A stretch of 64,000 nucleotides of DNA from Bacillus subtilis subsp. subtilis str. 168 (GCF_000009045.1 NC_000964.3:806001-870000), one strand, 5' to 3'. Positions 1,091-17,703 are shown, counted from the first letter of the stretch. Numbers and translations: made by a program. The notes: generated by a model not told the origin, from the sequence alone.

Positions 1091-2548
1091 ATGTTTCAAT
1101 ATGAAGAGTTGAATAAACAGTTTATCGGCGGGAAATGGCAGGAGGGCAGCAGCCCAAATGTATTGGAAAACAAAAATCCTTATACTCAAAAAACATTCAC
1201 AACATTCCGTAAAGCGACTGCTGACGATGTAGATGAAGCGTATCGGGCAGCGGCGCTGGCAAAGAAAAAATGGGATGCGGTCAACCCGTTCGAGAAAAGA
1301 ACCATTTTAGAAAAAGCCGTCACGTATATTGAAGAAAATGAAGAAGCCATTATTTATTTGATTATGGAGGAGCTAGGCGGTACAAGGCTCAAAGCAGCTT
1401 TTGAAATCGGTCTTGTCAAAAACATCATAAAAGAAGCGGCAACGTTCCCAATCCGCATGGAGGGGAAAATTCTTCCGTCAACAATAGATGGCAAGGAAAA
1501 CAGATTATATCGCGTGCCGGCAGGCGTTGTCGGTGTCATCAGTCCGTTTAACTTCCCATTCTTTTTATCTATGAAATCAGTGGCGCCTGCACTCGGAGCC
1601 GGCAATGGCGTTGTGCTAAAGCCGCATGAGGAAACGCCGATTTGCGGCGGAACGCTGATTGCGAAAATTTTTGAGAACGCGGGAATTCCAGCGGGGCTGC
1701 TGAATGTTGTTGTCACAGACATTGCTGAAATCGGCGACAGCTTCGTTGAGCATCCAGTGCCGCGGATCATCTCATTTACCGGTTCTACGAAAGTCGGCAG
1801 CTACATCGGACAGCTTGCGATGAAGCATTTTAAAAAGCCGCTTCTTGAGCTTGGCGGGAACAGCGCCTTCATCGTACTTGAGGATGCAGATATAGAATAT
1901 GCGGTCAATGCGGCGGTGTTCAGCCGATTTACACATCAAGGGCAGATTTGCATGTCAGCCAACCGCGTGCTTGTTCATTCTTCTATTTATGACAAGTTCC
2001 TTGAGCTGTACCAGGCAAAAGTGGAATCGCTGAAAGTCGGCGACCCAATGGACCCTGATACGATTATCGGGCCATTAATCAACAGCAGACAGACGGACGG
2101 GCTGATGAAGACTGTAGAGCAAGCAATTGAAGAAGGCGCTGTACCAGTGAAGCTTGGCGGATTTAACGGGACGATCGTGGAACCGACGATCTTAAAAGAC
2201 GTCAAACCGTTCATGAGCATTGCCAAGGAAGAGCTGTTCGGACCAGTCGTCTCCTTTATGAAGTTTGATTCAGAAGACGAAGCGGTGGATATCGCAAACG
2301 AAACCCCGTTTGGCTTGAGCGGTGCCGTACATACGTCAAATCTTGAGCGCGGCGTGGCTTTTGCGAAACGCATTGAAACAGGCATGATTCACGTCAATGA
2401 CACGACCATCAATGATGAACCGAATGTAGCCTTCGGCGGTGAAAAGCAATCAGGCCTCGGCCGTTTAAACGGTGAGTGGAGCCTCGAAGAATTTACAACG
2501 CTGAAATGGATCTCGGTCCAGCACGAAAAACGCAGCTTCCCTTATTAA
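1091..2548 (+). CDS. yfmT: Aldehyde dehydrogenase (vanillin/benzaldehyde dehydrogenase type), 485 aa
   Basis: ALDH motifs PFNFP, FTGST, LELGG, GQICMS (catalytic Cys), EELFGPV; RBS AAGGAG favours the ATG at 1091. Confidence 0.93.
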   Translation: MFQYEELNKQFIGGKWQEGSSPNVLENKNPYTQKTFTTFRKATADDVDEAYRAAALAKKKWDAVNPFEKRTILEKAVTYIEENEEAIIYLIMEELGGTRLKAAFEIGLVKNIIKEAATFPIRMEGKILPSTIDGKENRLYRVPAGVVGVISPFNFPFFLSMKSVAPALGAGNGVVLKPHEETPICGGTLIAKIFENAGIPAGLLNVVVTDIAEIGDSFVEHPVPRIISFTGSTKVGSYIGQLAMKHFKKPLLELGGNSAFIVLEDADIEYAVNAAVFSRFTHQGQICMSANRVLVHSSIYDKFLELYQAKVESLKVGDPMDPDTIIGPLINSRQTDGLMKTVEQAIEEGAVPVKLGGFNGTIVEPTILKDVKPFMSIAKEELFGPVVSFMKFDSEDEAVDIANETPFGLSGAVHTSNLERGVAFAKRIETGMIHVNDTTINDEPNVAFGGEKQSGLGRLNGEWSLEEFTTLKWISVQHEKRSFPY

Positions 2549-2561
2549 TGAAAAGGAGTGA

Positions 2562-3422
2562 ATGGAATTGACCATAAATACGGAAAAAGAAACCGCAGAT
2601 ATTCTGGACGCATTTATCAAAGTAGCCCCTTATTTAAACAGCCTGGTTCAGGATGATATTACAATCGGCATTTATGATACGGAAAAACTGCTCGTGAATA
2701 TACCGGCCAAAACCTTTTCGCTGAACGTAAAAGCCGGCGATCCGCTGCAGGAAGGGGATATCATCACAGATGCCATCCGCAGCAATCAGAAGAAGACGAG
2801 CATGGTTCCGAAAGAATTGTTCGGCTTCCCATTGATCGCGCGTGCCATCCCGCTGCACGACGAGAATGGAAGAGTCATTGGAGGCGTCGGCCTCGGAACG
2901 AGCCTTGAGGAGTCGTCAAAGCTGCATGATGTCGCGGAAAGCTTATCAGCTGTTGTTGAACAAACAGCCGCGGCTATTTCCGACATTTCTGAATCAATTA
3001 ACGGGTTTTCAACTCAAATGTCGGGCATTTCCTCTCAGGCGAAAAAAGTAAGCGAAAGCGCCGGTGAAATCGCCGATATTTCAGTAACTGTTAAAGGCAT
3101 CTCGGACCAAAGCAATCTGCTCGGCTTGAACGCCGCGATCGAAGCGGCAAGAGCAGGGGAGTCCGGAAAAGGATTCTCTGTCGTCGCAGATGAGATCAGA
3201 AAGCTAGCGACGCATTCAAAAGAAAATGTCGGCCAAATTGACCAGATTACGAAAAAAATCCACAGCCTGCTGAAAGGGCTGGAGGAATCCATTGAGTCGA
3301 TTAACCAGCATACAGACGGACAAGCCGCTGCTGTTGAACAAATTTCCGCCACGATGCAGGAGATTTCAGGAAGCGCGCAGCATCTTGCGAAAATGGCCGA
3401 AAAAGCGCTTGAGGAAGAGTAA
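2562..3422 (+). CDS. yfmS: Soluble methyl-accepting chemotaxis protein, 286 aa
   Basis: MCP signalling hairpin [32 protein letters not shown]; no transmembrane segment; RBS AAGGAG. Confidence 0.93.
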
Positions 3423-3423
3423 G

Positions 3424-3454
3424 AGACCGGGGACAAACATCCCCGGTCTTTTTC
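3424..3454 (+). terminator. Intrinsic terminator after yfmS
   Basis: AGACCGGGGA / TCCCCGGTCT stem followed by a T run. Confidence 0.85.
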
Positions 3455-3556
3455 TTATCCTGCATTTCCATGAAATTCGTCTGACGTTTTACTAGTTTTA
3501 TTCCAGCGGCTGATTTAAAATGTACACATGAACTTACGTGAGGATTGATAGGAACC

Positions 3557-5446
3557 ATGAGCATATTAAAAGCGGAAAATCTTTATAAAACATACGGAGA
3601 TAAAACATTATTTGACCATATCTCCTTTCATATTGAAGAGAATGAGAGAATCGGATTAATCGGGCCGAACGGAACAGGAAAATCAACGCTGTTGAAAGTG
3701 ATTGCCGGCTTGGAATCTATCGAAGAAGGAGAAATCACGAAATCCGGAAGCGTGCAGGTCGAATTTCTTCATCAAGACCCGGAGCTGCCTGCGGGGCAAA
3801 CAGTGCTGGAGCATATCTATTCCGGTGAATCGGCTGTGATGAAAACCTTGCGTGAATATGAAAAAGCGCTGTATGAACTGGGGAAAGATCCCGAAAATGA
3901 ACAGCGCCAGAAACACCTGCTGGCAGCACAAGCGAAAATGGACGCGAACAATGCATGGGATGCAAACACCTTGGCAAAAACCGTATTGTCTAAGCTGGGC
4001 GTCAACGACGTAACAAAACCGGTCAATGAGCTCTCAGGCGGCCAGAAAAAACGGGTGGCCATTGCCAAAAACTTAATTCAGCCCGCTGATTTGCTCATTT
4101 TGGACGAGCCGACAAACCATTTGGATAATGAAACGATTGAGTGGCTTGAAGGGTATTTAAGCCAATATCCCGGCGCCGTCATGCTGGTGACGCACGATAG
4201 ATATTTCTTAAACCGTGTCACCAACCGCATTTATGAGCTTGAAAGAGGCAGCCTCTACACTTACAAAGGCAACTATGAAGTGTTTTTAGAAAAACGCGCG
4301 GAACGGGAAGCGCAGGCTGAGCAAAAGGAAACGAAGCGGCAAAACCTGCTGCGCCGCGAACTGGCTTGGCTCAGACGAGGAGCGAAAGCCCGCTCCACAA
4401 AACAAAAAGCGAGAATTGACCGGGTAGAGACGCTTAAAGAGCAGACAGGCCCTCAGTCATCAGGTTCACTCGATTTTGCCATTGGCTCGCACCGTCTCGG
4501 AAAACAGGTTATTGAAGCGGAGAACGTCATGATCGCTTATGACGGCCGCATGCTCGTCGACCGTTTTAATGAACTTGTCATACCAGGTGAACGGATCGGG
4601 ATCATCGGGCCGAACGGCATCGGGAAAACAACGCTGTTAAATGCCCTTGCCGGCCGTCATACGCCGGACGGAGGCGATATTACGATCGGACAGACGGTCA
4701 GAATCGGCTACTATACTCAGGATCATAGTGAAATGAACGGTGAGTTAAAAGTCATTGACTATATAAAAGAAACGGCGGAGGTCGTAAAAACGGCAGATGG
4801 CGATATGATTACAGCTGAACAAATGCTCGAGCGTTTCCTCTTCCCGCGTTCGATGCAGCAGACGTATATCCGCAAGCTGTCCGGCGGGGAAAAACGCCGT
4901 TTATACTTGCTTCAGGTTCTCATGCAGGAGCCGAATGTCCTGTTTCTCGATGAGCCGACGAACGATTTGGATACTGAAACATTAAGCGTTCTTGAGGATT
5001 ATATTGACCAGTTCCCAGGCGTCGTCATCACCGTATCCCATGACCGCTATTTCCTTGACCGCGTCGTCGACCGTTTGATTGTATTTGAAGGAAATGGTGT
5101 CATTTCCCGCTTTCAAGGCTCCTATAGCGACTATATGGAGGAGTCAAAAGCGAAAAAAGCGGCCCCAAAACCGGCAGCTGAGGAAAAAACGGCTGAAGCC
5201 GAGCCGAAGAAAAAACGGAAAAAGCTTTCTTACAAAGACCAGTTGGAATGGGACGGCATCGAAGATAAAATTGCCCAGCTGGAAGAAAAGCATGAACAGC
5301 TTGAAGCTGACATCGCCGCAGCAGGCAGTGATTTTGGCAAAATCCAAGAGCTGATGGCCGAGCAGGCGAAAACGGCGGAAGAGCTTGAGGCTGCGATGGA
5401 CCGCTGGACAGAATTGTCCCTCATGATCGAAGAACTGGAAAGCTAA
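3557..5446 (+). CDS. yfmR: ABC-F ATPase (Uup-like ribosome-associated factor), 629 aa
   Basis: Two NBDs (GPNGTGKS, LSGGQ, LDEPTNHLD; GPNGIGKT, LSGGE, LDEPTNDLD), inter-domain linker, C-terminal KKLSYKDQ coiled coil, no TM segments. Confidence 0.95.
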   Translation: MSILKAENLYKTYGDKTLFDHISFHIEENERIGLIGPNGTGKSTLLKVIAGLESIEEGEITKSGSVQVEFLHQDPELPAGQTVLEHIYSGESAVMKTLREYEKALYELGKDPENEQRQKHLLAAQAKMDANNAWDANTLAKTVLSKLGVNDVTKPVNELSGGQKKRVAIAKNLIQPADLLILDEPTNHLDNETIEWLEGYLSQYPGAVMLVTHDRYFLNRVTNRIYELERGSLYTYKGNYEVFLEKRAEREAQAEQKETKRQNLLRRELAWLRRGAKARSTKQKARIDRVETLKEQTGPQSSGSLDFAIGSHRLGKQVIEAENVMIAYDGRMLVDRFNELVIPGERIGIIGPNGIGKTTLLNALAGRHTPDGGDITIGQTVRIGYYTQDHSEMNGELKVIDYIKETAEVVKTADGDMITAEQMLERFLFPRSMQQTYIRKLSGGEKRRLYLLQVLMQEPNVLFLDEPTNDLDTETLSVLEDYIDQFPGVVITVSHDRYFLDRVVDRLIVFEGNGVISRFQGSYSDYMEESKAKKAAPKPAAEEKTAEAEPKKKRKKLSYKDQLEWDGIEDKIAQLEEKHEQLEADIAAAGSDFGKIQELMAEQAKTAEELEAAMDRWTELSLMIEELES

Positions 5447-5478
5447 AAAGCGTGGCCGCAGCAGGCCGCGCTTTTTTT
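5447..5478 (+). terminator. Intrinsic terminator after yfmR
   Basis: AAAGCGTGGCC / GGCCGCGCTTT stem followed by a T run. Confidence 0.75.
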
Positions 5479-5568
5479 CACATAATGGACAAAAACGAAC
5501 CGGCCTGCTTATGTTAGGATAAAGTTGTGTGTCAGCGGCACATGGAAAACTAACGGAGATGATGAAGT

Positions 5569-6015
5569 ATGACATGGGCGATCGTGATGTTAATTCTCAT
5601 GAGTCTGGTGAAAATCGTATTAACCTGTCTTCCTACAGGCGTCATAGAATGGCTGCTCGGCAAATTTGAAGTGCACGCCAAGCTGAGTGACGAAAATGCG
5701 AGTCTCTCTCTAGATGGAAAACGCCTCGAGGGTGCAGAGAAGCAGAAAGTGATTGATCAATTTAACGAAGCTATCTTCCTGGAAAAATATTATATCTATC
5801 CAGGTGATGAAGAGCGTTATTTACATCCGGAAAACGGCGGCACGCCTCTGGTGATAGATACAAAAAAAGGAAAAAAAGACGTGAAGCTGTTCGTGTACCG
5901 CTACGACGACCATATCGACGTCGTGAAACAGTACAAGAAGAAAGTGATCGCGTATCGAGTGCTTTCTGAAAGCCTTCAAAAAGAGTCTCTGTCAGTGGCG
6001 GGAAGTTTAGCTTAA
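5569..6015 (+). CDS. yfmQ: Uncharacterised protein with N-terminal membrane anchor, 148 aa
   Basis: Clean ORF with RBS GGAG; hydrophobic N-terminus MTWAIVMLILMSLVKIV; gene order. Confidence 0.85.
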   Translation: MTWAIVMLILMSLVKIVLTCLPTGVIEWLLGKFEVHAKLSDENASLSLDGKRLEGAEKQKVIDQFNEAIFLEKYYIYPGDEERYLHPENGGTPLVIDTKKGKKDVKLFVYRYDDHIDVVKQYKKKVIAYRVLSESLQKESLSVAGSLA

Positions 6016-6073
6016 ACAGGAAAGTGAAAGACGGGTGCTGTATGCTGCTCGTCTTTTTTATTGTTTTTTAAAA

Positions 6074-6109
6074 CTTAACGTTTACGTTAAGGTTCAAAAG
6101 GTGTATAAT
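6074..6109 (+). promoter_or_regulatory. yfmPO sigma-A promoter with overlapping MerR-type palindrome
   Basis: CTTAACGT-TT-ACGTTAAG at 6074-6091 overlaps TTTACG (6081-6086), which lies 17 bp before TATAAT (6104-6109). Confidence 0.7.
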
Positions 6110-6139
6110 GGTAACAGAAACGGCGAAGGGGGATTTACC

Positions 6140-6562
6140 TTGGAATGGATGAAGATTGATCAAGTGGCCAAAAGAAGCGGGCTGACAAAGCGGACCATCC
6201 GGTTTTATGAAGAAATCGGCTTGATTCCGGCGCCGAAACGGACAGACGGCGGTGTAAGGCTTTATTCAGAGGATGATATGGAGGAGCTTGAGAAAGTCAT
6301 CAGCACAAAAGAGGTGCTCGGTTTTTCCCTTCAGGAGCTTCAGCATTTCATGGAAACCAGCCGCCAGCTAGAGTTAAACAAAGAGGGGTATTTGTTGTCA
6401 CTGGATCCTAAGGAACGGAAAGAAAAACTGGAGGAAATTCAGGAAACCCTGAATCACCAGCTGGATTTGATTGATGAGAAAATCCGCACATTCCAAAGCT
6501 TTAAAGAACGCCTGCAGGGCATGAAAGGCAAAGCGGAACGCGCCATTCAATCAATCGAATGA
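6140..6562 (+). CDS. yfmP: MerR-family transcriptional regulator, 140 aa
   Basis: MerR HTH IDQVAKRSGLTKRTIRFYEEIGLI...GVRLYS; TTG start after GAAGGGGG. Confidence 0.92.
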   Translation: MEWMKIDQVAKRSGLTKRTIRFYEEIGLIPAPKRTDGGVRLYSEDDMEELEKVISTKEVLGFSLQELQHFMETSRQLELNKEGYLLSLDPKERKEKLEEIQETLNHQLDLIDEKIRTFQSFKERLQGMKGKAERAIQSIE

Positions 6563-6627
6563 AAAGTTTGTTAAACGCTATTTTTGTAGCGTTTCTTTTA
6601 ATGGAATAAAGATGGAGGTTAGGTCAA

Positions 6628-7818
6628 ATGGATAAGACAACACAAGTGAATCAGAAAACGGGTTTGCTCAGCCAGCCAAAAGCGGTATGGGCTGTCGCGT
6701 TTGCCTGTGTGATTTCTTTTATGGGAATCGGGCTGGTCGATCCAATTCTTCCGGCCATTGCCGCACAATTGCATGCTTCACCTAGTGAAGTATCACTCTT
6801 GTTTACAAGTTATTTGCTTGTAACCGGATTTATGATGTTTTTCTCAGGAGCCATTTCCAGCCGCATCGGCGCGAAATGGACATTAATTCTCGGACTTATT
6901 TTTATTATTGTGTTTGCGGGGCTTGGCGGCAGCTCAAGCTCAATCGCTCAGTTAGTCGGCTATCGCGGCGGCTGGGGATTAGGGAATGCTTTGTTTATTT
7001 CAACAGCGCTTGCGGTCATCGTTGGCGTGTCAGTCGGCGGCAGCGCCCAAGCGATTATTTTGTATGAGGCCGCGCTCGGTCTCGGGATTTCTGTCGGGCC
7101 GCTTGCAGGCGGAGAGCTCGGAAGCATTTCATGGCGCGCACCGTTTTTTGGAGTATCTGTCCTGATGTTTATTGCGTTAATCGCGATTTCTTTCATGCTT
7201 CCGAAGCTGCCGAAACCGGCGAAACGCGTCGGTGTGTTTGATGCGATGAAGGCACTCAAATATAAAGGCCTGCTGACAATGGCGGTATCGGCATTCCTAT
7301 ACAACTTTGGATTTTTTATTTTGCTAGCTTATTCTCCGTTCGTACTGGATTTAGATGAACACGGTCTTGGATATGTCTTCTTCGGCTGGGGCCTTCTGCT
7401 GGCGATTACGTCAGTCTTTACGGCGCCGCTCGTGCACAAAGCGCTGGGCACAGTGCGTTCGCTAGTCGTTCTCTTTATCGCCTTTGCGGCCATTCTCGTT
7501 ATTATGGGGATCTGGACAGACCATCAGACTTTGATTATTACATGTATCGTTGTCGCTGGTGCTGTCCTCGGTATGGTGAATACGATCATGACAACCGCTG
7601 TGATGGGTTCTGCGCCGGTTGAACGTTCAATCGCGTCTTCAGCCTACAGCTCAGTCCGCTTCATCGGCGGCGCGCTCGCCCCGTGGATTGCAGGAATGCT
7701 GTCAGAACACTTTACTGCAAGCACACCATATACAGTAGGCGGAATCGTCGTTTTTGTCGGCATGCTTGTCCTTCTCATGGGACGTAAACATCTTGCTGGA
7801 ATTAAGGCGGGGCATTAA
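6628..7818 (+). CDS. yfmO: MFS efflux transporter, 396 aa
   Basis: About 12 hydrophobic segments; MFS motif A-like GAISSRIGAK; RBS GGAGG. Confidence 0.92.
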   Translation: MDKTTQVNQKTGLLSQPKAVWAVAFACVISFMGIGLVDPILPAIAAQLHASPSEVSLLFTSYLLVTGFMMFFSGAISSRIGAKWTLILGLIFIIVFAGLGGSSSSIAQLVGYRGGWGLGNALFISTALAVIVGVSVGGSAQAIILYEAALGLGISVGPLAGGELGSISWRAPFFGVSVLMFIALIAISFMLPKLPKPAKRVGVFDAMKALKYKGLLTMAVSAFLYNFGFFILLAYSPFVLDLDEHGLGYVFFGWGLLLAITSVFTAPLVHKALGTVRSLVVLFIAFAAILVIMGIWTDHQTLIITCIVVAGAVLGMVNTIMTTAVMGSAPVERSIASSAYSSVRFIGGALAPWIAGMLSEHFTASTPYTVGGIVVFVGMLVLLMGRKHLAGIKAGH

Positions 7819-11809: not shown

Positions 11810-12829
11810 TCAGCTCGGATCACTGACCTTGATCAGCTGTTTCCCTTTATTTTCTCCCTTAAATAAACCGAGAAACGCGTCAGGAATGTTTTCGAAGCCT
11901 TCTGTGATGGTTTCCTCGTAATGGAGTTTACCAGCCTTCAGCCATTCTGCCAGCTGTTTTGCTCCCTCAGAAAAACGATCGGAGTAGTCGCTTACGATAA
12001 AGCCTTGCATCAGCGACTTCGTTTTAATGAGTTTTGATTGGACACGAGGGCCCATGTCATCTGCTTCGCTTTCTGCGTTATAGGAAGAAATGGCGCCGCA
12101 CACCGGAATGCGGGCAAATTCATTGAGCAGATTCATCACCGCGTCTGAAATCGGTCCGCCGACATTGTCAAAATACACATCGACACCGTCAGGACAAGCG
12201 TTTTGAAGCGCTTTTTGGATATCATCCGCTGTTTTGTAATTGATGGCTTCGTCAAACTGAAGCTCCTGTTTTAAATAGTCGATTTTTTCATCAGAGCCCG
12301 CGATGCCGACGACTCGCGCGCCTTTGATTTTGGCAATTTGCCCGACTGTTGAACCGACGGCTCCGGCAGCTCCTGAGACAACCACGGTTTCGCCTTCCTT
12401 CGGGCGTCCGATGTCCAGCAATCCGAAGTATGCTGTTAAGCCGGTCATTCCCAAAATGCCGAGATAGGCCGAAGCGGGAGCAAGGCTTGTATCAATTTTT
12501 CGCAAGGCAGACTCGCTCACAGCGGAAAATTCCTGCCAGCTGAGATTTCCGATGACGATATCGCCTTTTTTCAGATGATTCCCGTCTGACACAACTTCAG
12601 CGATAACCCCTCCAGAAAGCGCTTTATCCAAGGCGAACGGCTCAACATATGACTTCGTATCCTGCATACGGCCGCGCATATAAGGGTCAACCGATACATA
12701 AAGCGTTTTGACAAGCACTTCCCCTTGCTTGGGTTCAGGAACCGGAATGGTTTCAAAGCGAAAGTCTTCATGAACAGGAATACCTTGTGGACGTCTTGCT
12801 AATTGAATTTGCTGCTGAGATGCTGTCAT
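11810..12829 (-). CDS. yfmJ: NADP-dependent Zn-independent MDR oxidoreductase (CurA/PGR-like), 339 aa
   Basis: LARRPQGIP, SVDPYMRGRM, GMTGLTAYFGL, VSGAAGAVG, DVYFDNVGG, GKQL; RBS GGAGG. Confidence 0.93.
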   Translation of the reverse strand: MTASQQQIQLARRPQGIPVHEDFRFETIPVPEPKQGEVLVKTLYVSVDPYMRGRMQDTKSYVEPFALDKALSGGVIAEVVSDGNHLKKGDIVIGNLSWQEFSAVSESALRKIDTSLAPASAYLGILGMTGLTAYFGLLDIGRPKEGETVVVSGAAGAVGSTVGQIAKIKGARVVGIAGSDEKIDYLKQELQFDEAINYKTADDIQKALQNACPDGVDVYFDNVGGPISDAVMNLLNEFARIPVCGAISSYNAESEADDMGPRVQSKLIKTKSLMQGFIVSDYSDRFSEGAKQLAEWLKAGKLHYEETITEGFENIPDAFLGLFKGENKGKQLIKVSDPS

Positions 12830-12929
12830 TTTCATCCTCCTATCACTTGGTTGACACCACTGTAACATGGACAGGAGAGGAAATACAAAAGGTAAGCTGG
12901 CATACAAAAAAGGTTATAGATGAGCTTAT

Positions 12930-13235
12930 GCTTTCTACAAGCTCTTTTGTTTTAAAAGTTCTCTTTAGTCATTTATCATTATTAGAAAACAGAACAGAAA
13001 AAGAGCTCCTGTACACCTAGCTAAGATTGGCTAGTGTGTATGTCGATTCTTTTTCATATTCTTGCAAGCATCTGCGAGGGGGAGCTTAGTCGTTCACATT
13101 TTGCTTTCGCATCAATCTGCAATAGCAAAGTCTATGCGATTTTTTTACATCAGCAAAGATTTGTTCAATTTTTTCCTTTTATGCCGAGTTTTTCTGAAAC
13201 AGATAATTGATGGTACTCAACCATTTTCTTTTGGT
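12930..13235 (-). mobile_element. Degenerate 3' remnant of an IS1182-family-like transposase (left copy)
   Basis: Minus strand reads ...QLSVSEK / KEKIEQIFADVKKSHRLCYCRLMRKQNVND* / ACKNMKK with stop and frameshifts; resembles, from memory, the IS1182 C-terminus KEKIERSFADSKQLHGLRYCRLRG...ACQNMKKIA. Confidence 0.65.
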
Positions 13236-13310
13236 CAATAAAGTAATGTTTACTTATTAATTAAACACGCGAAAAAGCAAACGAAAACATAATTAAATTT
13301 TATATATTTA

Positions 13311-14531
13311 TTAAAAGCTTATATGTTTATTTACCTTTTTTTTGAATTGTAATTGAGAAAATCCATATATTGCGGACACTAATAAAAGAATACCTGCTGA
13401 AACATAAACTAAACGAACTCCAAGGAAATCTGAAATAGCCCCTATAGCCAGAATTGAAAACATAAAAATGAACTGTACTAAAGAAGACCTTGCAGACATT
13501 ATATTAATTCGAGTTTGCTCGGTTGTTATGTTCTGAATAAGTGTTTCTTGTGTAAGATCTCTTAATATATAAGCCGGCCCCATAAAGAGAACCAAAATTA
13601 GAGCTAAGTATGAATTACTTATAAAACCATATATTAAAGTTAAACTTCCATATGAGACAGCGCCAATTAACATAAAATTAATTAACTTATTTTGAAATCT
13701 CTCCGACAGCTTATATATTATAAATCCCCCTATCATCGAACCTAAATAATATGCTCCATTAATAAATCCCCACCATGATTCTCCTTTATGCAAGACTTCG
13801 TTAACGAAAGCTAAAGAGACAGATCCTATCCAAATCATTCCTGCCCATGACTCAATTAAATCCATAATAATAATTGTTCTAAGTTTCTTTTGGCTAAATA
13901 AATACCGCCAACCACTTACTATACTCTTATTGGGAGAATTTTTTTCACGTATGACAGAATTAGCGTGGCCATGTGGTAGACAAAATAAAAGAGAAAGAAG
14001 AGATGTAAACAACAAAAAGATAGTAAGTATAATGGTATATCCCTCACCTAAAAATGCAATTATGAGACCACCTAAAGACCAGCCTACAAATTGAAAAGTT
14101 TGGTCCACTGTAGATAATAATCCATTTGCTTTTACTCTTCTATCAGGAGAGATTATTTCCCCTATAATTGCACTTTTTAAAGGTGAGAACCATCCATTAA
14201 AAAAGGAAATACAGCTAATAATAATAAAGACTAAAATGAGAGTTTGATTAGAGTAAGTTCTTAATAAAGCATAGAACAAACATATTAATAACAGCATTTG
14301 TATCAATTGAGAAATAATTATTGTAAGAGGCAGTTTTAATCGAATTGTTATTAACGGTAATATAGCACTTCCAAAAATACGAAAAATAATACTTATTAAT
14401 GTCACCATAGAGGCGATGGTTGTCGAATTGGTCATTTTAAACAAAAACGAAATCACTACCATAGTATATAGAGAAAAACCTAAATTTGTAGTGGTCTGGC
14501 TAAATAAAATAGAATAATAACCTTTACTCAT
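13311..14531 (-). CDS. yfmI: MFS exporter (DHA3/MefA-like), 406 aa, AT-rich
   Basis: About 12 TM segments; SQTTTNLGFSLY N-terminus, PLKSAIIGEII, RVKANGLLSTVDQ; RBS AGGGAGG. Confidence 0.9.
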   Translation of the reverse strand: MSKGYYSILFSQTTTNLGFSLYTMVVISFLFKMTNSTTIASMVTLISIIFRIFGSAILPLITIRLKLPLTIIISQLIQMLLLICLFYALLRTYSNQTLILVFIIISCISFFNGWFSPLKSAIIGEIISPDRRVKANGLLSTVDQTFQFVGWSLGGLIIAFLGEGYTIILTIFLLFTSLLSLLFCLPHGHANSVIREKNSPNKSIVSGWRYLFSQKKLRTIIIMDLIESWAGMIWIGSVSLAFVNEVLHKGESWWGFINGAYYLGSMIGGFIIYKLSERFQNKLINFMLIGAVSYGSLTLIYGFISNSYLALILVLFMGPAYILRDLTQETLIQNITTEQTRINIMSARSSLVQFIFMFSILAIGAISDFLGVRLVYVSAGILLLVSAIYGFSQLQFKKKVNKHISF

Positions 14532-14728
14532 ATGTATCCTCCCTTGGAATAATTTTTCTCGGTAAAGAGCTTAAACATATTTAAACACCTTAAAACAACA
14601 AAAGTAAAGAAAAAATTTCCTTGTAAACTATTTACTTTTATTCTATTTATTGTTATTGTTTATTTAAGTTCTCTGACTATTCTATCAATATTCAGGGAAC
14701 CACATATCTTATTAAAGGGGGGAAAACC

Positions 14729-14800
14729 ATGAGAAAATTAAGAAAAAACTGGAGAAAATCGATTGTTAGCCCGGTTCTTTATACTAATGAAAAATGGTAA
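14729..14800 (+). CDS. yfmH: 23-aa peptide MRKLRKNWRKSIVSPVLYTNEKW (below ORF-track cut-off)
   Basis: AAAGGGGGG RBS, 6 nt to ATG 14729, TAA at 14798-14800; directly upstream of yfmG. Confidence 0.75.
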   Translation: MRKLRKNWRKSIVSPVLYTNEKW

Positions 14801-14808
14801 ACACTTAG

Positions 14809-14831
14809 GGAATAGCATTTAATGCTATTCC
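14809..14831 (+). other. Perfect 11-bp inverted repeat between yfmH and yfmG
   Basis: GGAATAGCATT-T-AATGCTATTCC. Confidence 0.85.
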
Positions 14832-14866
14832 TTATTTCAACAAACAAATCGGGAGGTTATCGTAAT

Positions 14867-16330
14867 TTGACTCTATTAATGCAAGATCATAAATCAATTT
14901 ACAATAAAGATATAGAAATATTAATTGAAGTTGAAGAACTTATTACTTCTGTTCCAGAAAATAAAAAAAATGATTTTAAGAGTTTAATCGATAATAGAAT
15001 TATGACTCTACTAAATAAAATTCAACACCCTGTAGCAGCGGAAAATGTGTTTGGGATGTGTATTGCTTATCCGAATACTTACATAAGGTATAGATTAATT
15101 GATTTCGTTGAAAAATGGGTACCTTATTTCTCTGCTGTAGAAACTATAATCAATCTAACCCAGGATCCGGATGATTTAGTTTCTTTTAAAGCTATGGATG
15201 TCTGTGCAAATCATAAAATTGAAGAATCTGTAGCATATTTGTCTTCGATTATTGATGATGTCCGGGAGAGTATAAGCTACCCTAAAAAACCTGTGGGATT
15301 AGGGGCCCAAAAAGTATTAAGTACATTATTAGATATATTCGGTGTTGAAAAACATGAAGAGCTAGTAATGCTAAAAAATTATTTTGATCAAAATGGTATA
15401 CTTCCTAATAACTTTGACTTTGAAGAAAAAATTCCTCAAAGTCTAATAGAGGAATTCGAAAAAACAGAAGAAGATGGGATGATTTTAATTCCGGGTGGCT
15501 TTTTTGAATTCGGTTTAAATGAAAATGAAATTCCTGACAAAACATTTAATTGGAAAGATGCTGTTCCTAGACAAAAAGTATGGTTACCTCCATTTTTTAT
15601 CGATAAGTATCCTGTTACAAATAAAGATTATGATATCTTTACCGAGTTCATAGAGGAAAATGGGCATATATTCTGTCATCCTAATGAACCGCAGAATAAA
15701 CAACATAGAAGAAATACATATTGGGATGATAGGTATTTAGATAATCATCCCGTTACAGGTATAGATTTTTATGATGCATTTGCTTACGCAAGATATAAGG
15801 GGAAAGAATTGCCAACCGAGTTTCAATGGGAAAAAGCTGCTCGAGGCGAAAAGGGTAATGTCTGGCCTTGGGGAGATAAATTTGATCCTGCAAAGGTTCA
15901 ATATGCTGGAAGTCTTTATAATGAACCCATTACTTCTTTAAAGTCCTGGAGAGAAAATTTATTAAAAGCTCATGCTGATAAAGAATTAAATCATTTAACA
16001 AGTGATATTTTTGAACAAAATGGTGAAAGTCCCTATGGAGTATGCGGTATGATCGGCGGAACATGGGAGTGGACTAGAAGTGAGCTTAAAACAAAGAGAG
16101 CTTTCCACCCTATTTTTGAGAATGTACCATTTAATAGTGTTAACTCATTTGCCGTTCTTAAAGGAGGATCATTCTTCTCTCATCCAGGCTTAATGTTCCC
16201 TTCTTTTAGAGCAAAAGATATTCCTTTCTGTCGACACAATGAAATGGGGATTAGATGCGTAAAGAATATTCCAGTATATAAAATTAGAGAATCAATTAAT
16301 GGGCCAATTACTAATAAAGCAATTTATTAA
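14867..16330 (+). CDS. yfmG: FGE/SUMF1-sulfatase-modifying-fold protein with helical N-terminal domain, 487 aa
   Basis: MILIPGGFFEFG, FFIDKYPVTN, HPVTGIDFYDAFAYA, LPTEFQWEKAARG, WPWG, SPYGVCGMIGGTWEWT, LKGGSF, GIRCV; GGGAGG then TTG at 14867. Confidence 0.88.
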   Translation: MTLLMQDHKSIYNKDIEILIEVEELITSVPENKKNDFKSLIDNRIMTLLNKIQHPVAAENVFGMCIAYPNTYIRYRLIDFVEKWVPYFSAVETIINLTQDPDDLVSFKAMDVCANHKIEESVAYLSSIIDDVRESISYPKKPVGLGAQKVLSTLLDIFGVEKHEELVMLKNYFDQNGILPNNFDFEEKIPQSLIEEFEKTEEDGMILIPGGFFEFGLNENEIPDKTFNWKDAVPRQKVWLPPFFIDKYPVTNKDYDIFTEFIEENGHIFCHPNEPQNKQHRRNTYWDDRYLDNHPVTGIDFYDAFAYARYKGKELPTEFQWEKAARGEKGNVWPWGDKFDPAKVQYAGSLYNEPITSLKSWRENLLKAHADKELNHLTSDIFEQNGESPYGVCGMIGGTWEWTRSELKTKRAFHPIFENVPFNSVNSFAVLKGGSFFSHPGLMFPSFRAKDIPFCRHNEMGIRCVKNIPVYKIRESINGPITNKAIY

Positions 16331-16384
16331 TCATTCTAGGTTAGAGACTTGATAAAAGTATACTAACATTGTGTAGTAATGTTC

Positions 16385-16670
16385 AGCTTGTAGAAAAAAC
16401 AATGTTTTTTCTACAAGATTTTATTTTAAATGCTTTTCAAAATTATCAGGGATTGAGAATCAGAAAAAGAGCCATTAAGCTCGATCTTAGCTAGGTATTA
16501 CGATCTTCTGTATATTATTGTGAGAAATATAGAAGATTCAGTTAGTTAGCATTTCGATTTTAAGCTGAGCCTGCAATAGCAAAGCATCTGTTTTGATTAT
16601 TCTTTTTCTGATACATAAGCTAATTTTGTCGCTTTTCTTTTTTGTCTTTTCACGCATTTCGAGGATGACT
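16385..16670 (-). mobile_element. Second, more decayed IS1182-like 3' remnant (right copy), same orientation as the left copy
   Basis: Shares TTTCTACAAG, CAGAAAAAGAGC and CTGCAATAGCAAAG with the left copy in the same order; minus strand reads RNA*KDKKEKRQN*L..., KQMLCYCRL, NIQKIV..LAK. Confidence 0.6.
16387..16427 (+). terminator. 14-bp perfect hairpin plus T run after yfmG (probably also part of the IS end)
   Basis: CTTGTAGAAAAAAC-AAT-GTTTTTTCTACAAG followed by ATTTTATTTT. Confidence 0.7.
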
Positions 16671-16850
16671 TACTATAATTCTTTCAGCTTTTCTATGTGT
16701 TAAGATTCGAATAGATGAAATAACTTTAACAAGTTGGTCAATAAGAACAGATTTAACTTTATGTTAAAAGAGTATCTCGTATAGAACATAAGAAGAATGA
16801 CGAGTTTTTTAAGATTATCATCAATTATGTGAGAATAAAATATTATAAGG

Positions 16851-16883
16851 GAAAATGAAGGCTGTCACGTTTCTCGACAGCCC
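16851..16883 (-). terminator. Terminator of the yfmCDEF operon
   Basis: GGCTGTC / GACAGCC stem; T-rich tail on the minus strand. Confidence 0.65.
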
Positions 16884-16902
16884 TAGGGAATTCCTCTCCT
16901 TT

Positions 16903-17703
16903 TCATTTCGCCCGTAATTTCGGGCACAGTCCCGTCGGCAGGCACATTGGCTTCTGGTCGATCGGGCTTCTCATGATGCAGCATTCCAAGCCGAAGACTT
17001 CACGGAAAAATGGCTGGGTGAACACATCTTCCGGTGTTCCGGCGTTGTATATTTTTCCGTCCAGCACACTGATCAGATAGTCAGCATATTGAGCGGCTTG
17101 GTTTAAATCATGGAGCACCATGACAACGGTGCGGCCATGGTCGCGGTTCAGCTTTTTCAGCAGTTCAAGCACTTCAATCTGATGTGAGATGTCTAAATAC
17201 GTGGTCGGCTCATCAAGCAAAAGCAAATCAGTGCCTTGCGCAAGTGCCATGGAAATCCAGGCTCTTTGTCTTTGGCCGCCTGAGAGGGCATCAAGTGTCC
17301 GATCCTTCAGTTCAATCATGCCCGTTGCTTCCAGCGCCCACTCTACCATGTCATGATCCTCTTGGGTATGCTTGGATAACAGCTTTTTGTGAGGATGTCT
17401 GCCAAAATAGCATAATTCCTCTACCGTCAATCCTTCAGGAGCCTGAGGAGATTGTGGAAGAATGGCCAGTTTTTTTGCGACTTCTTTTGATGGCTGGCGG
17501 TGGATGTCTTTTCCTTCTAGTAGCACTGTACCGCTTTTTGGGGCCATCAGCCTGGCGAGCGATTTGAGGATTGTTGATTTACCGCAGCCATTAGCGCCGA
17601 TGAGCGCAGTGATTTTTCCTTCTTCTATCTTTAAGTCGACTCCGTCAATAATCACTGTACTGTCATATGAAAGAGTGAGCTGGTCTGCAGCCAGTTTTCC
17701 CAT
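16903..17703 (-). CDS. yfmF: Ferric-citrate ABC importer ATPase, 266 aa
   Basis: [43 protein letters not shown]. Confidence 0.95.

Follow-up and report, generated by a model that had tools for sequence, protein, structure and literature searches.

A probable fossil IS1182-family transposable unit carrying yfmI-yfmH-yfmG in the yfmF terminator of Bacillus subtilis

We analysed a 64,000-nucleotide stretch of the chromosome of Bacillus subtilis subsp. subtilis str. 168 (GCF_000009045.1 NC_000964.3:806001-870000), here called the window, with positions counted from its first letter. Between yfmJ and yfmF it holds an AT-rich island with the genes yfmI, yfmH and yfmG, bracketed by degenerate direct repeats. 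Our main conclusion, to which we assign a probability of about 0.8, is that ~12914-16884 is one decayed transposable unit derived from an IS1182-family insertion sequence (IS) and inserted into the yfmF terminator. The unit consists of a left remnant, IS_L (end A and the transposase 3′ end), then yfmI, yfmH and yfmG, and a right remnant, dIS_R (end A, an internal deletion and end B), both remnants pointing in the same direction. The most fitting description is a TnSha1-like or compound IS1182-family unit: one complete pair of ends survives, and a composite of two complete ISs is indistinguishable from a partial IS, cargo and an IS. A preliminary description of this DNA had proposed a fossil composite transposon, and that proposal is supported by IS homology, direct orientation, boundaries at IS termini, a hairpin target and selected cargo.

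Identity of the repeats

The similarity between the two flanks of the island is well above background. Three exact blocks had been reported in the same order on both sides, and both their presence and their order hold. TTTCTACAAG occurs at 12932 and 16408, with its reverse complement also at 16387; CAGAAAAAGAGC occurs at 12995 and 16461; and CTGCAATAGCAAAG occurs at 13117 and 16571, the last position replacing the 16581 first given. All three are unique to these sites in the window. The spacing from CAGAAAAAGAGC to CTGCAATAGCAAAG is 122 bp on the left and 110 bp on the right, which corrects the earlier values of 122 and 120 bp. Local alignment of the yfmJ-yfmI spacer (12908-13310) with the yfmG-yfmF spacer (16331-16902) gives a score of 49. 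Dinucleotide shuffles score 19.6 ± 3.2 (maximum 35; 0 of 500 reach 49) and the reverse-complement control scores 23, so the repeats pass the comparison with shuffled controls that had been proposed for them. By blastn in the whole window, the left and right repeats are 62.9% identical over 256 columns (12932-13180 versus 16408-16636, E 4e-6), and no third copy is found. The repeats do bracket a low-GC island, as described: its GC content is 26-35%, against 45-50% in the flanks. The repeats belong to no known RNA family, an Rfam scan of 12500-17200 at E ≤ 1 having returned zero matches, and six-frame reading of both repeat flanks shows no open reading frame (ORF).

A distant blastn search revealed what the repeats resemble. 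The left copy matches a B. subtilis plasmid (NZ_CP032858.1; 71.7% identity, E 9e-28) at a place annotated as "IS1182 family transposase", and the right copy matches the same place. As reference we used the element at this place, an intact 1557-bp IS (L087:5977-7533) with inverted repeats CAGCTTGTAGAGAAAA / CAGGCTGTCGAGAAAA, a hairpin at each end, and a 450-amino-acid transposase containing the domains DUF772 (PF05598, E 3e-27) and DDE_Tnp_1_6 (PF13751, E 2e-28). Related intact copies lie on B. subtilis and B. pumilus plasmids. Compared with the window by blastn, the reference matches the two remnants (Table 1) and nothing beyond them.

IS_L comprises end A and ~290 bp of the transposase 3′ end. 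Transposase residues 399-445 align by tblastn to 13178-13038 on the minus strand (E 4e-5), with the peptide KEKIEQIFADVKKSHRLCYCRLMRKQNVND facing KEKIERSFADSKQLHGLRYCRLRGKRNVSEQ of the intact transposase. The end-A inverted repeat and hairpin of IS_L (12914-12943) are degenerate: TTATAGAGGAAC, found in B. spizizenii TU-B-10 and four other genomes, agrees with the inverted-repeat core of the intact IS, TTGTAGAGAAAA, at 10/12 positions. In dIS_R the end-A inverted repeat CAGCTTGTAGAAAAAA and its hairpin occupy 16384-16419, and 15/16 inverted-repeat positions match. A transposase 3′ remnant follows to ~16690, and a deletion junction near 16691 removes about IS 400-1352. Beyond the junction come a transposase 5′ remnant and leader, then the end-B hairpin GGCTGTCacgTTTCTCGACAGCC at 16860-16882, with the element ending at 16884. 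The exact blocks take their place in this structure: TTTCTACAAG forms the inner arm of the hairpin at end A, and the transposase codons for ...LRYCRL... contain the 14-mer block. Beyond 13231, neither IS 300-520 nor IS 1330-1557 has a significant match, and therefore the deletion breakpoints of IS_L and dIS_R differ.

Neither flank contains an intact transposase gene; what is left is a 47-amino-acid C-terminal remnant with a stop, and ~30 N-terminal codons. The minus-strand transposase-like peptides noticed earlier are genuine remnants of the C terminus. On the right these peptide fragments are spread over several frames, and the DNA there matches the same IS region (E 1e-16). By these alignments, both repeats are IS1182-family fossils in direct orientation and not as active ISs, in agreement with the earlier proposal of two IS copies; both match the annotated intact element in the same orientation. 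The IS is of the "ISBma2-like" type, active representatives of which occur in natto and plasmid-bearing strains of B. subtilis. The name IS4Bsu1 was considered and found to be unsupported, since the natto genome paper has separate "ISBma2-like" transposases (PMC2867830). Two other origins for the repeats were rejected. The right flank is not a remnant of a second yfmI in a tandem unit, since 16700-16890 scores below shuffles against the yfmI 3′ region. Nor are the repeats regular companions of the MFS-FGE gene module: the Priestia flanks of that module lack similarity to IS_L or dIS_R, and lack an internal repeat.

Insertion boundaries and target

Comparison with related genomes locates the insertion. 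A scan of species-representative genomes with YfmJ gave seven loci from the B. subtilis group. In four of them (L001, L002, L003 and L007) the site is empty, with yfmF 107-169 bp from yfmJ: B. mexicanus, B. spizizenii DV1-B-1 (L002), B. rugosus and B. mojavensis. In B. spizizenii TU-B-10 (L004) it is occupied by yfmI-yfmG. Thus, the comparison of the yfmJ-yfmF interval that had been suggested does reveal empty sites, and the limits of the insert coincide with outer IS termini. A bidirectional terminator hairpin, AAAAAAGGAGAGGGGGT(T)CCTCTCCTTTTCAT, occupies the site in three of the four empty genomes (DV1-B-1, B. rugosus and B. mojavensis), and its intact form in DV1-B-1 folds at −27.6 kcal/mol; B. 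mexicanus has a longer spacer and a different hairpin.

The left flank of the window is colinear with the empty sites up to ...CATACAAAAAAGG (12913), and the right flank resumes with AGGGAATTCCTCTCCTTTTCAT (16885). Therefore ~3.97 kb was inserted into the hairpin, with both repeats inside the insert, and the ancestral yfmF hairpin is split in the window, its left arm being separated from its loop and right arm. By this comparison, the insertion point is the rho-independent terminator hairpin between yfmF and yfmJ. The right boundary, 16884, is exactly the last base of end B (GGCTGTCacgTTTCTCGACAGCCCT, versus ...GGCTGTCGAGATTTTCTCGACAGCCTG in the intact IS). The left boundary adjoins the degenerate end A, where an alternative register (AGAGG in the hairpin arm) shifts the junction by ~10 bp. 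The inserted unit was thus bounded by an outer end A on the left and an outer end B on the right. The repeats lie within inserted DNA, and the element is larger than the 12930-16670 first proposed, because the right IS reaches 16884 and not ~16670; the right repeat as first described makes up the left two thirds of dIS_R.

A hairpin target is characteristic of this IS lineage. The reference IS has a copy of a 19-bp palindromic terminator (ACAGCAATTTAATTGCTGT) on either side, the duplicated target in which it lies, and the copy on B. pumilus pBP-T2 (L088, 80% identity) has a 28-bp terminator hairpin duplicated on both sides. A near-full-length copy in Bacillus sp. ISL-51 (L005:3833-5283; 82% identity) with a frameshifted transposase is flanked by two different terminator-like hairpins. 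An IS derivative on plasmid pBs001 (NZ_CP045822.1, L089:1501-2918) has a hairpin on one flank; it consists of IS 1-188, 861 bp of unrelated DNA with a 254-amino-acid hypothetical ORF, and IS 1188-1557, and is transposase-less. All four thus lie in or beside hairpins, and the unit in the window likewise splits one. Elsewhere in the IS1182 family, IS1272 and TnSha1, the latter composed of IRL′, sh-fabI and IS1272, insert into terminator and other hairpins with partial hairpin deletion and no target-site duplication (PMC4923244; PMC5678879).

Several further observations concern these relatives. The pBs001 element resembles a mobile insertion cassette, while pBS32 of NCIB 3610 and ~20 sister plasmids have only IS 1188-1557. 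The ISL-51 copy lies 4.7 kb from a yfmJ orthologue, in a neighbourhood from which yfmK and yfmF-D are absent. In DV1-B-1, where the yfmJ-yfmF site is empty, a 60-bp match to the end-A hairpin (L002:495-554, 80% identity) lies ~9.4 kb from yfmJ; it could be a solo IS end or merely a similar terminator.

Age, decay and selection

Seven genomes have an occupied site: the window, TU-B-10 and five more assemblies, for which the YfmG source names are B. cabrialesii, B. subtilis and B. spizizenii. All seven share the locus, the junctions and the major IS truncations, and therefore trace back to one insertion event. Within the remnants, lineage-specific deletions of 79, 27 and 21 bp and smaller ones are superimposed on the shared truncations. 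Across the seven genomes, variable columns amount to 1.9% in yfmG and 3.4% in yfmI, to 31% in the interior of dIS_R and to 7-11% in its two hairpins. For yfmG, the ratio of nonsynonymous to synonymous substitution rates (dN/dS) is 0.09 against TU-B-10 and 0.08 against Priestia; for yfmI it is 0.13 and 0.17, respectively. In the Priestia comparison, dS is saturated. The cargo is under purifying selection, and the IS remnants are full of stops, indels and substitutions. The earlier view of the cargo as intact and selected is therefore supported.

Between the window and TU-B-10, IS_L is 92.7% and dIS_R 88.2% identical, which corresponds to a remnant divergence of 7-12%. The cargo has a dS of 0.04-0.05, whereas flanking core genes have values of 0.23-0.49, 5-10 times higher. 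Taken together, these values imply that the island copies coalesce later than their flanks and were spread by homologous recombination. The cargo dS also lies below the mismatch rate of the IS remnants, which suggests a recent interspecies exchange of the island or of its centre.

The two remnants have not diverged at the same pace. They are 53-56% identical across the end-A multiple alignment and ~63% identical in their best local segment. In the multiple alignment, IS_L is 65-70% and dIS_R 54-59% identical to intact ISs, and both diverge close to the base of the three intact copies in the sample. dIS_R evolves 2-3 times faster than IS_L, both before and after the common ancestor of the island copies (post-ancestor ratio ~2.2). 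In the maximum-likelihood tree, the branch of each remnant before the island ancestor is ~6 times its branches since. That this ratio is the same in both fits a simultaneous inactivation well before the island ancestor. The slower left remnant may be partly constrained by its position, with the 3′ end of yfmI on one side and the promoter of yfmJ on the other.

All major truncations are thus older than the common ancestor of the island copies, which come from genomes under the names B. subtilis, B. spizizenii and B. cabrialesii. The data fit both a history in which the bulk of the decay took place at this locus and one in which it took place in a donor. The earlier argument that decay implies an old insertion thus stands as a lower bound, through the shared truncations, but not beyond it, since the decay may have occurred in the donor. 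We abandoned dating the insertion from the divergence of IS_L and dIS_R, because pre- and post-insertion decay are inseparable and the island has been exchanged between lineages.

Organization of the island and its cargo

The features of the locus are collected in Table 1. The native left flank ends in AAAAAAGG, which comprises an A-run and the first left-arm bases of the ancestral yfmF/yfmJ intergenic terminator hairpin. Homology to the Priestia MFS-FGE module extends beyond yfmI into the spacer that separates IS_L from the stop codon of this gene, and covers the last 25 bp of that spacer. The island contains no integrase or att-like repeat; an integrase/att or Campbell-type origin was accordingly rejected, the repeats being IS fragments.

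Table 1. Features of the yfmK-yfmD region and matches to the 1557-bp reference IS (window coordinates)
Feature	Position	Strand	Basis
yfmK (GNAT) and yfmJ (ADH_N_2/ADH_zinc_N)	yfmJ end at 12829	-	Pfam, gene order
Native yfmJ upstream region, left target flank, terminal motif AAAAAAGG (12906-12913)	12830..12913	-	Colinear with empty sites
IS_L, truncated IS1182-family remnant	12914..13231	-	blastn/tblastn to intact IS, multiple alignment
IS_L match to IS 25-323	12932-13231		blastn, 71.4% identity, E 2e-40
Spacer between IS_L and yfmI stop codon; no significant IS match	13232..13310	.	Alignment
yfmI, MFS transporter, 406 amino acids, cargo	13311..14531	-	Pfam MFS_1, E 1e-22
yfmH, 23-codon leader peptide, strong ribosome-binding site, cargo	14729..14800	+	Read from sequence
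yfmG, 487 amino acids, TTG start, FGE-sulfatase/EgtB-like C-terminal domain, cargo	14867..16330	+	Pfam PF03781, E 1e-68
dIS_R, 501-bp internally deleted IS1182-family element, both ends kept	16384..16884	-	blastn, breakpoint alignments
dIS_R match to IS 1-233	16384-16596		blastn, 66.1% identity, E 1e-16
dIS_R match to IS 287-378	16608-16695		blastn, 68.4% identity, E 0.002
dIS_R match to IS 1391-1555	16724-16882		blastn, 70.5% identity, E 2e-18
Right target flank AGGGAATTCCTCTCCTTT: loop and right arm of ancestral yfmF hairpin	16885..16902	-	Empty-site comparison
yfmF, yfmE, yfmD, ABC transporter	from 16903	-	Pfam, gene order

The leader peptide YfmH regulates yfmG, which starts with TTG, through amino-acid-responsive transcription attenuation (doi 10.1101/2020.04.20.051573). 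An FGE-like enzyme and an exporter nearby had prompted us to consider yfmH as the precursor of a ribosomally synthesized and post-translationally modified peptide acted on by YfmG. We dropped that reading because yfmH is a published attenuator leader peptide. The whole attenuator device (14729-14866) lies inside the mobile unit and would therefore have travelled with it.

Homologues of YfmG (50-77% identity) have an adjoining MFS gene in every context examined. Their distribution is patchy: Priestia, an Anoxybacillus-labelled assembly, B. thermophilus, B. wiedmannii, Kroppenstedtia, Mammaliicoccus and Staphylococcus. The YfmG/MFS modules often stand beside other mobile-element genes, in an integrative and conjugative element (ICE)-like setting in Priestia and with Tn3-like, Mu/Tn7-like or IS21 genes elsewhere. 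Around more distant homologues (L091/L092 from B. thermophilus and L093 from B. wiedmannii, ~1500-7500) the cluster is larger, with an MFS gene, a second FGE-like paralogue and a PhyH dioxygenase gene divergent from the YfmG-like gene; the B. wiedmannii cluster adjoins ATP-grasp ligases and an aminotransferase. Such gene contexts hint that the cargo may make or modify an exported small molecule.

Discussion

Two lines of evidence point to a compound element. First, the cargo is flanked on either side by an end A and remnants of a transposase 3′ end, which derive from one IS lineage and point the same way. Second, the limits of the unit are outer IS termini, exactly so on the right at 16884 and to within ~10 bp of end A on the left. 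A plausible course of events would begin with transposase, from a then-intact flanking IS or supplied in trans, cutting at the left outer end A and the right outer end B. The unit would have moved as a compound, TnSha1-like transposon into the hairpin, a kind of target into which intact relatives of this IS, and IS1272, also insert. The transposase genes would then have decayed while selection kept the cargo, and the terminal hairpins of dIS_R would now be placed where yfmG (+) and yfmF (−) need terminators.

Several findings weigh against this history. There is no clear target-site duplication around the unit, and the left arm of the hairpin is partly missing or altered; decay could have erased such a duplication. 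The hairpin copy that intact relatives leave behind is absent on the left, where the inverted repeat is degenerate and the junction is known to ± ~10 bp. The cassette is flanked by this IS at no other locus among the homologues examined, and the repeats are missing from its nearest outside homologue, which belongs to Priestia megaterium and shows 70% DNA identity. A search for the cassette at other loci, suggested in the preliminary description, thus came out negative: all seven occupied genomes have it at the same locus, and homologous cargo elsewhere lacks this IS. IS_L and dIS_R are weak sisters (63% bootstrap, maximum-likelihood tree), with dIS_R ~2-3 times more diverged. The island also appears from these comparisons to have been exchanged between lineages by homologous recombination in competent species, which blurs dating. 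Finally, no transposase survives, so that we infer the mobility of the unit. The earlier claim that IS copies mobilised yfmI-yfmH-yfmG holds to the extent that the boundaries and empty sites fit it.

We consider it unlikely that the unit was instead assembled stepwise in place, with a solo IS (now dIS_R) first entering the yfmF terminator, the cargo and a second IS fragment arriving later by recombination or adjacent transposition (Campbell-type or translocatable-unit), and no compound move. Such a sequence would accommodate the 2- to 3-fold greater divergence of dIS_R from intact ISs, the weak monophyly of the two remnants, and the complete and well-preserved pair of ends that dIS_R possesses by itself. 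However, the genomes examined include no IS-only site, four being empty and seven fully occupied with identical junctions. Moreover, the faster rate of dIS_R persists after the island ancestor (ratio ~2.2); thus, the asymmetry reflects rate, not age. The left junction also adjoins an end-A remnant, as the move of a unit predicts.

Somewhat less probable still is an arrival independent of the IS, by transformation and illegitimate recombination or in a lost integrative element, with the IS pieces as passenger debris from the donor. The insert is limited by an IS terminus on either side, which on the right coincides exactly with the end-B hairpin; its target is a hairpin of the type used by this IS lineage; and the island is without an integrase or att-like repeat. 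These observations outweigh the missing target-site duplication and transposase, and the company of other mobile-element kinds (ICE-like, Tn3-like, Mu/Tn7-like and IS21) in which YfmG/MFS modules ride elsewhere. Chance similarity of two AT-rich intergenic stretches, which the low identity of the two copies (~55-63%) might suggest, can be dismissed, since 0 of 500 shuffles reach the observed score and both copies independently match an annotated IS (E 2e-40 and 1e-16).

It is useful to compare the compound unit that we favor with known systems. TnSha1 and TnSha2 of staphylococci, built on IS1272 (PMC4923244), likewise belong to the IS1182 family, have metabolic cargo between a degenerate extra IS end and an IS copy, and insert into hairpins. 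They do so with partial hairpin loss and no target-site duplication, and no clear duplication is visible around our unit. In the window, by contrast, the left boundary is a real ~320-bp IS fragment with transposase coding remnants rather than mere inverted-repeat-like sequence, neither transposase gene is functional any longer, and yfmI-yfmH-yfmG is carried as cargo in a host of the B. subtilis group. The intact Bacillus relatives also differ from the staphylococcal elements, in that they duplicate the whole target hairpin rather than delete it.

Classical compound transposons with direct IS repeats provide a second comparison. In Tn9, for example, two direct copies of IS1 flank the cargo and their outer ends define the unit. 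The window shares this arrangement and these limits, but its ISs are decayed, only one complete end pair is left, no clear target-site duplication is visible, and a hairpin serves as the target. Mobile insertion cassettes, such as MIC231 from IS231 in the B. cereus group, have IS ends that bracket passenger genes and no transposase. Both MIC231 and the pBs001 element resemble our unit in having IS ends around passenger genes and in needing transposase in trans, and pBs001 shows that this lineage forms such derivatives. Unlike them, the window has a second, internal end A and two transposase remnants, which points to two IS copies rather than to one IS with a replaced interior. Finally, the remnants share terminal hairpin inverted repeats and transposase 5′ and 3′ ends with the ISBma2-like IS of B. 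subtilis natto and plasmids (WP_014478984.1; PMC2867830), at 55-71% DNA identity, but are non-coding fossils.

These comparisons bear on the origin of a chromosomal operon. B. subtilis Marburg 168 has been described as without typical insertion sequences (PMC2867830). At this locus, a B. subtilis-type chromosome carries fossils of the same IS1182-family (ISBma2-like) element whose active copies are found in natto and plasmid-bearing strains. These fossils explain the origin of the AT-rich yfmI-yfmH-yfmG island, the yfmH/yfmG attenuator of which was studied earlier without knowledge of the source of the operon.

The remnants may also have acquired a new role. Both dIS_R hairpins score as terminator-like, facing yfmG and yfmF (−15.7 and −14.4 kcal/mol), and as judged from sequence they probably serve as the terminators of these genes. 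A more tentative extension, which we put forward as somewhat less than an even chance, is that the terminal hairpins of the IS lineage are inward-facing intrinsic terminators, which would make insertion "self-healing", either because the target hairpin is duplicated or because an IS end substitutes for it. The ends of dIS_R would then have been exapted for yfmG (16387-16417, +) and yfmF (16884-16858, −), and selected while the interior decays. If true, this would account for the ability of an IS family to specialise on terminators at low cost, and for the persistence of these fossils in the chromosome of a strain type described as without typical ISs (PMC2867830, on strain 168).

The element is of an ordinary mobile-element kind, here met as a fossil, and the result is one of annotation and evolution that changes no paradigm. 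Within those bounds, the locus offers a clean natural case of hairpin-targeted cargo transposition outside staphylococci, with preserved empty sites and a series of decay steps, and it suggests that IS ends are reusable as gene terminators.

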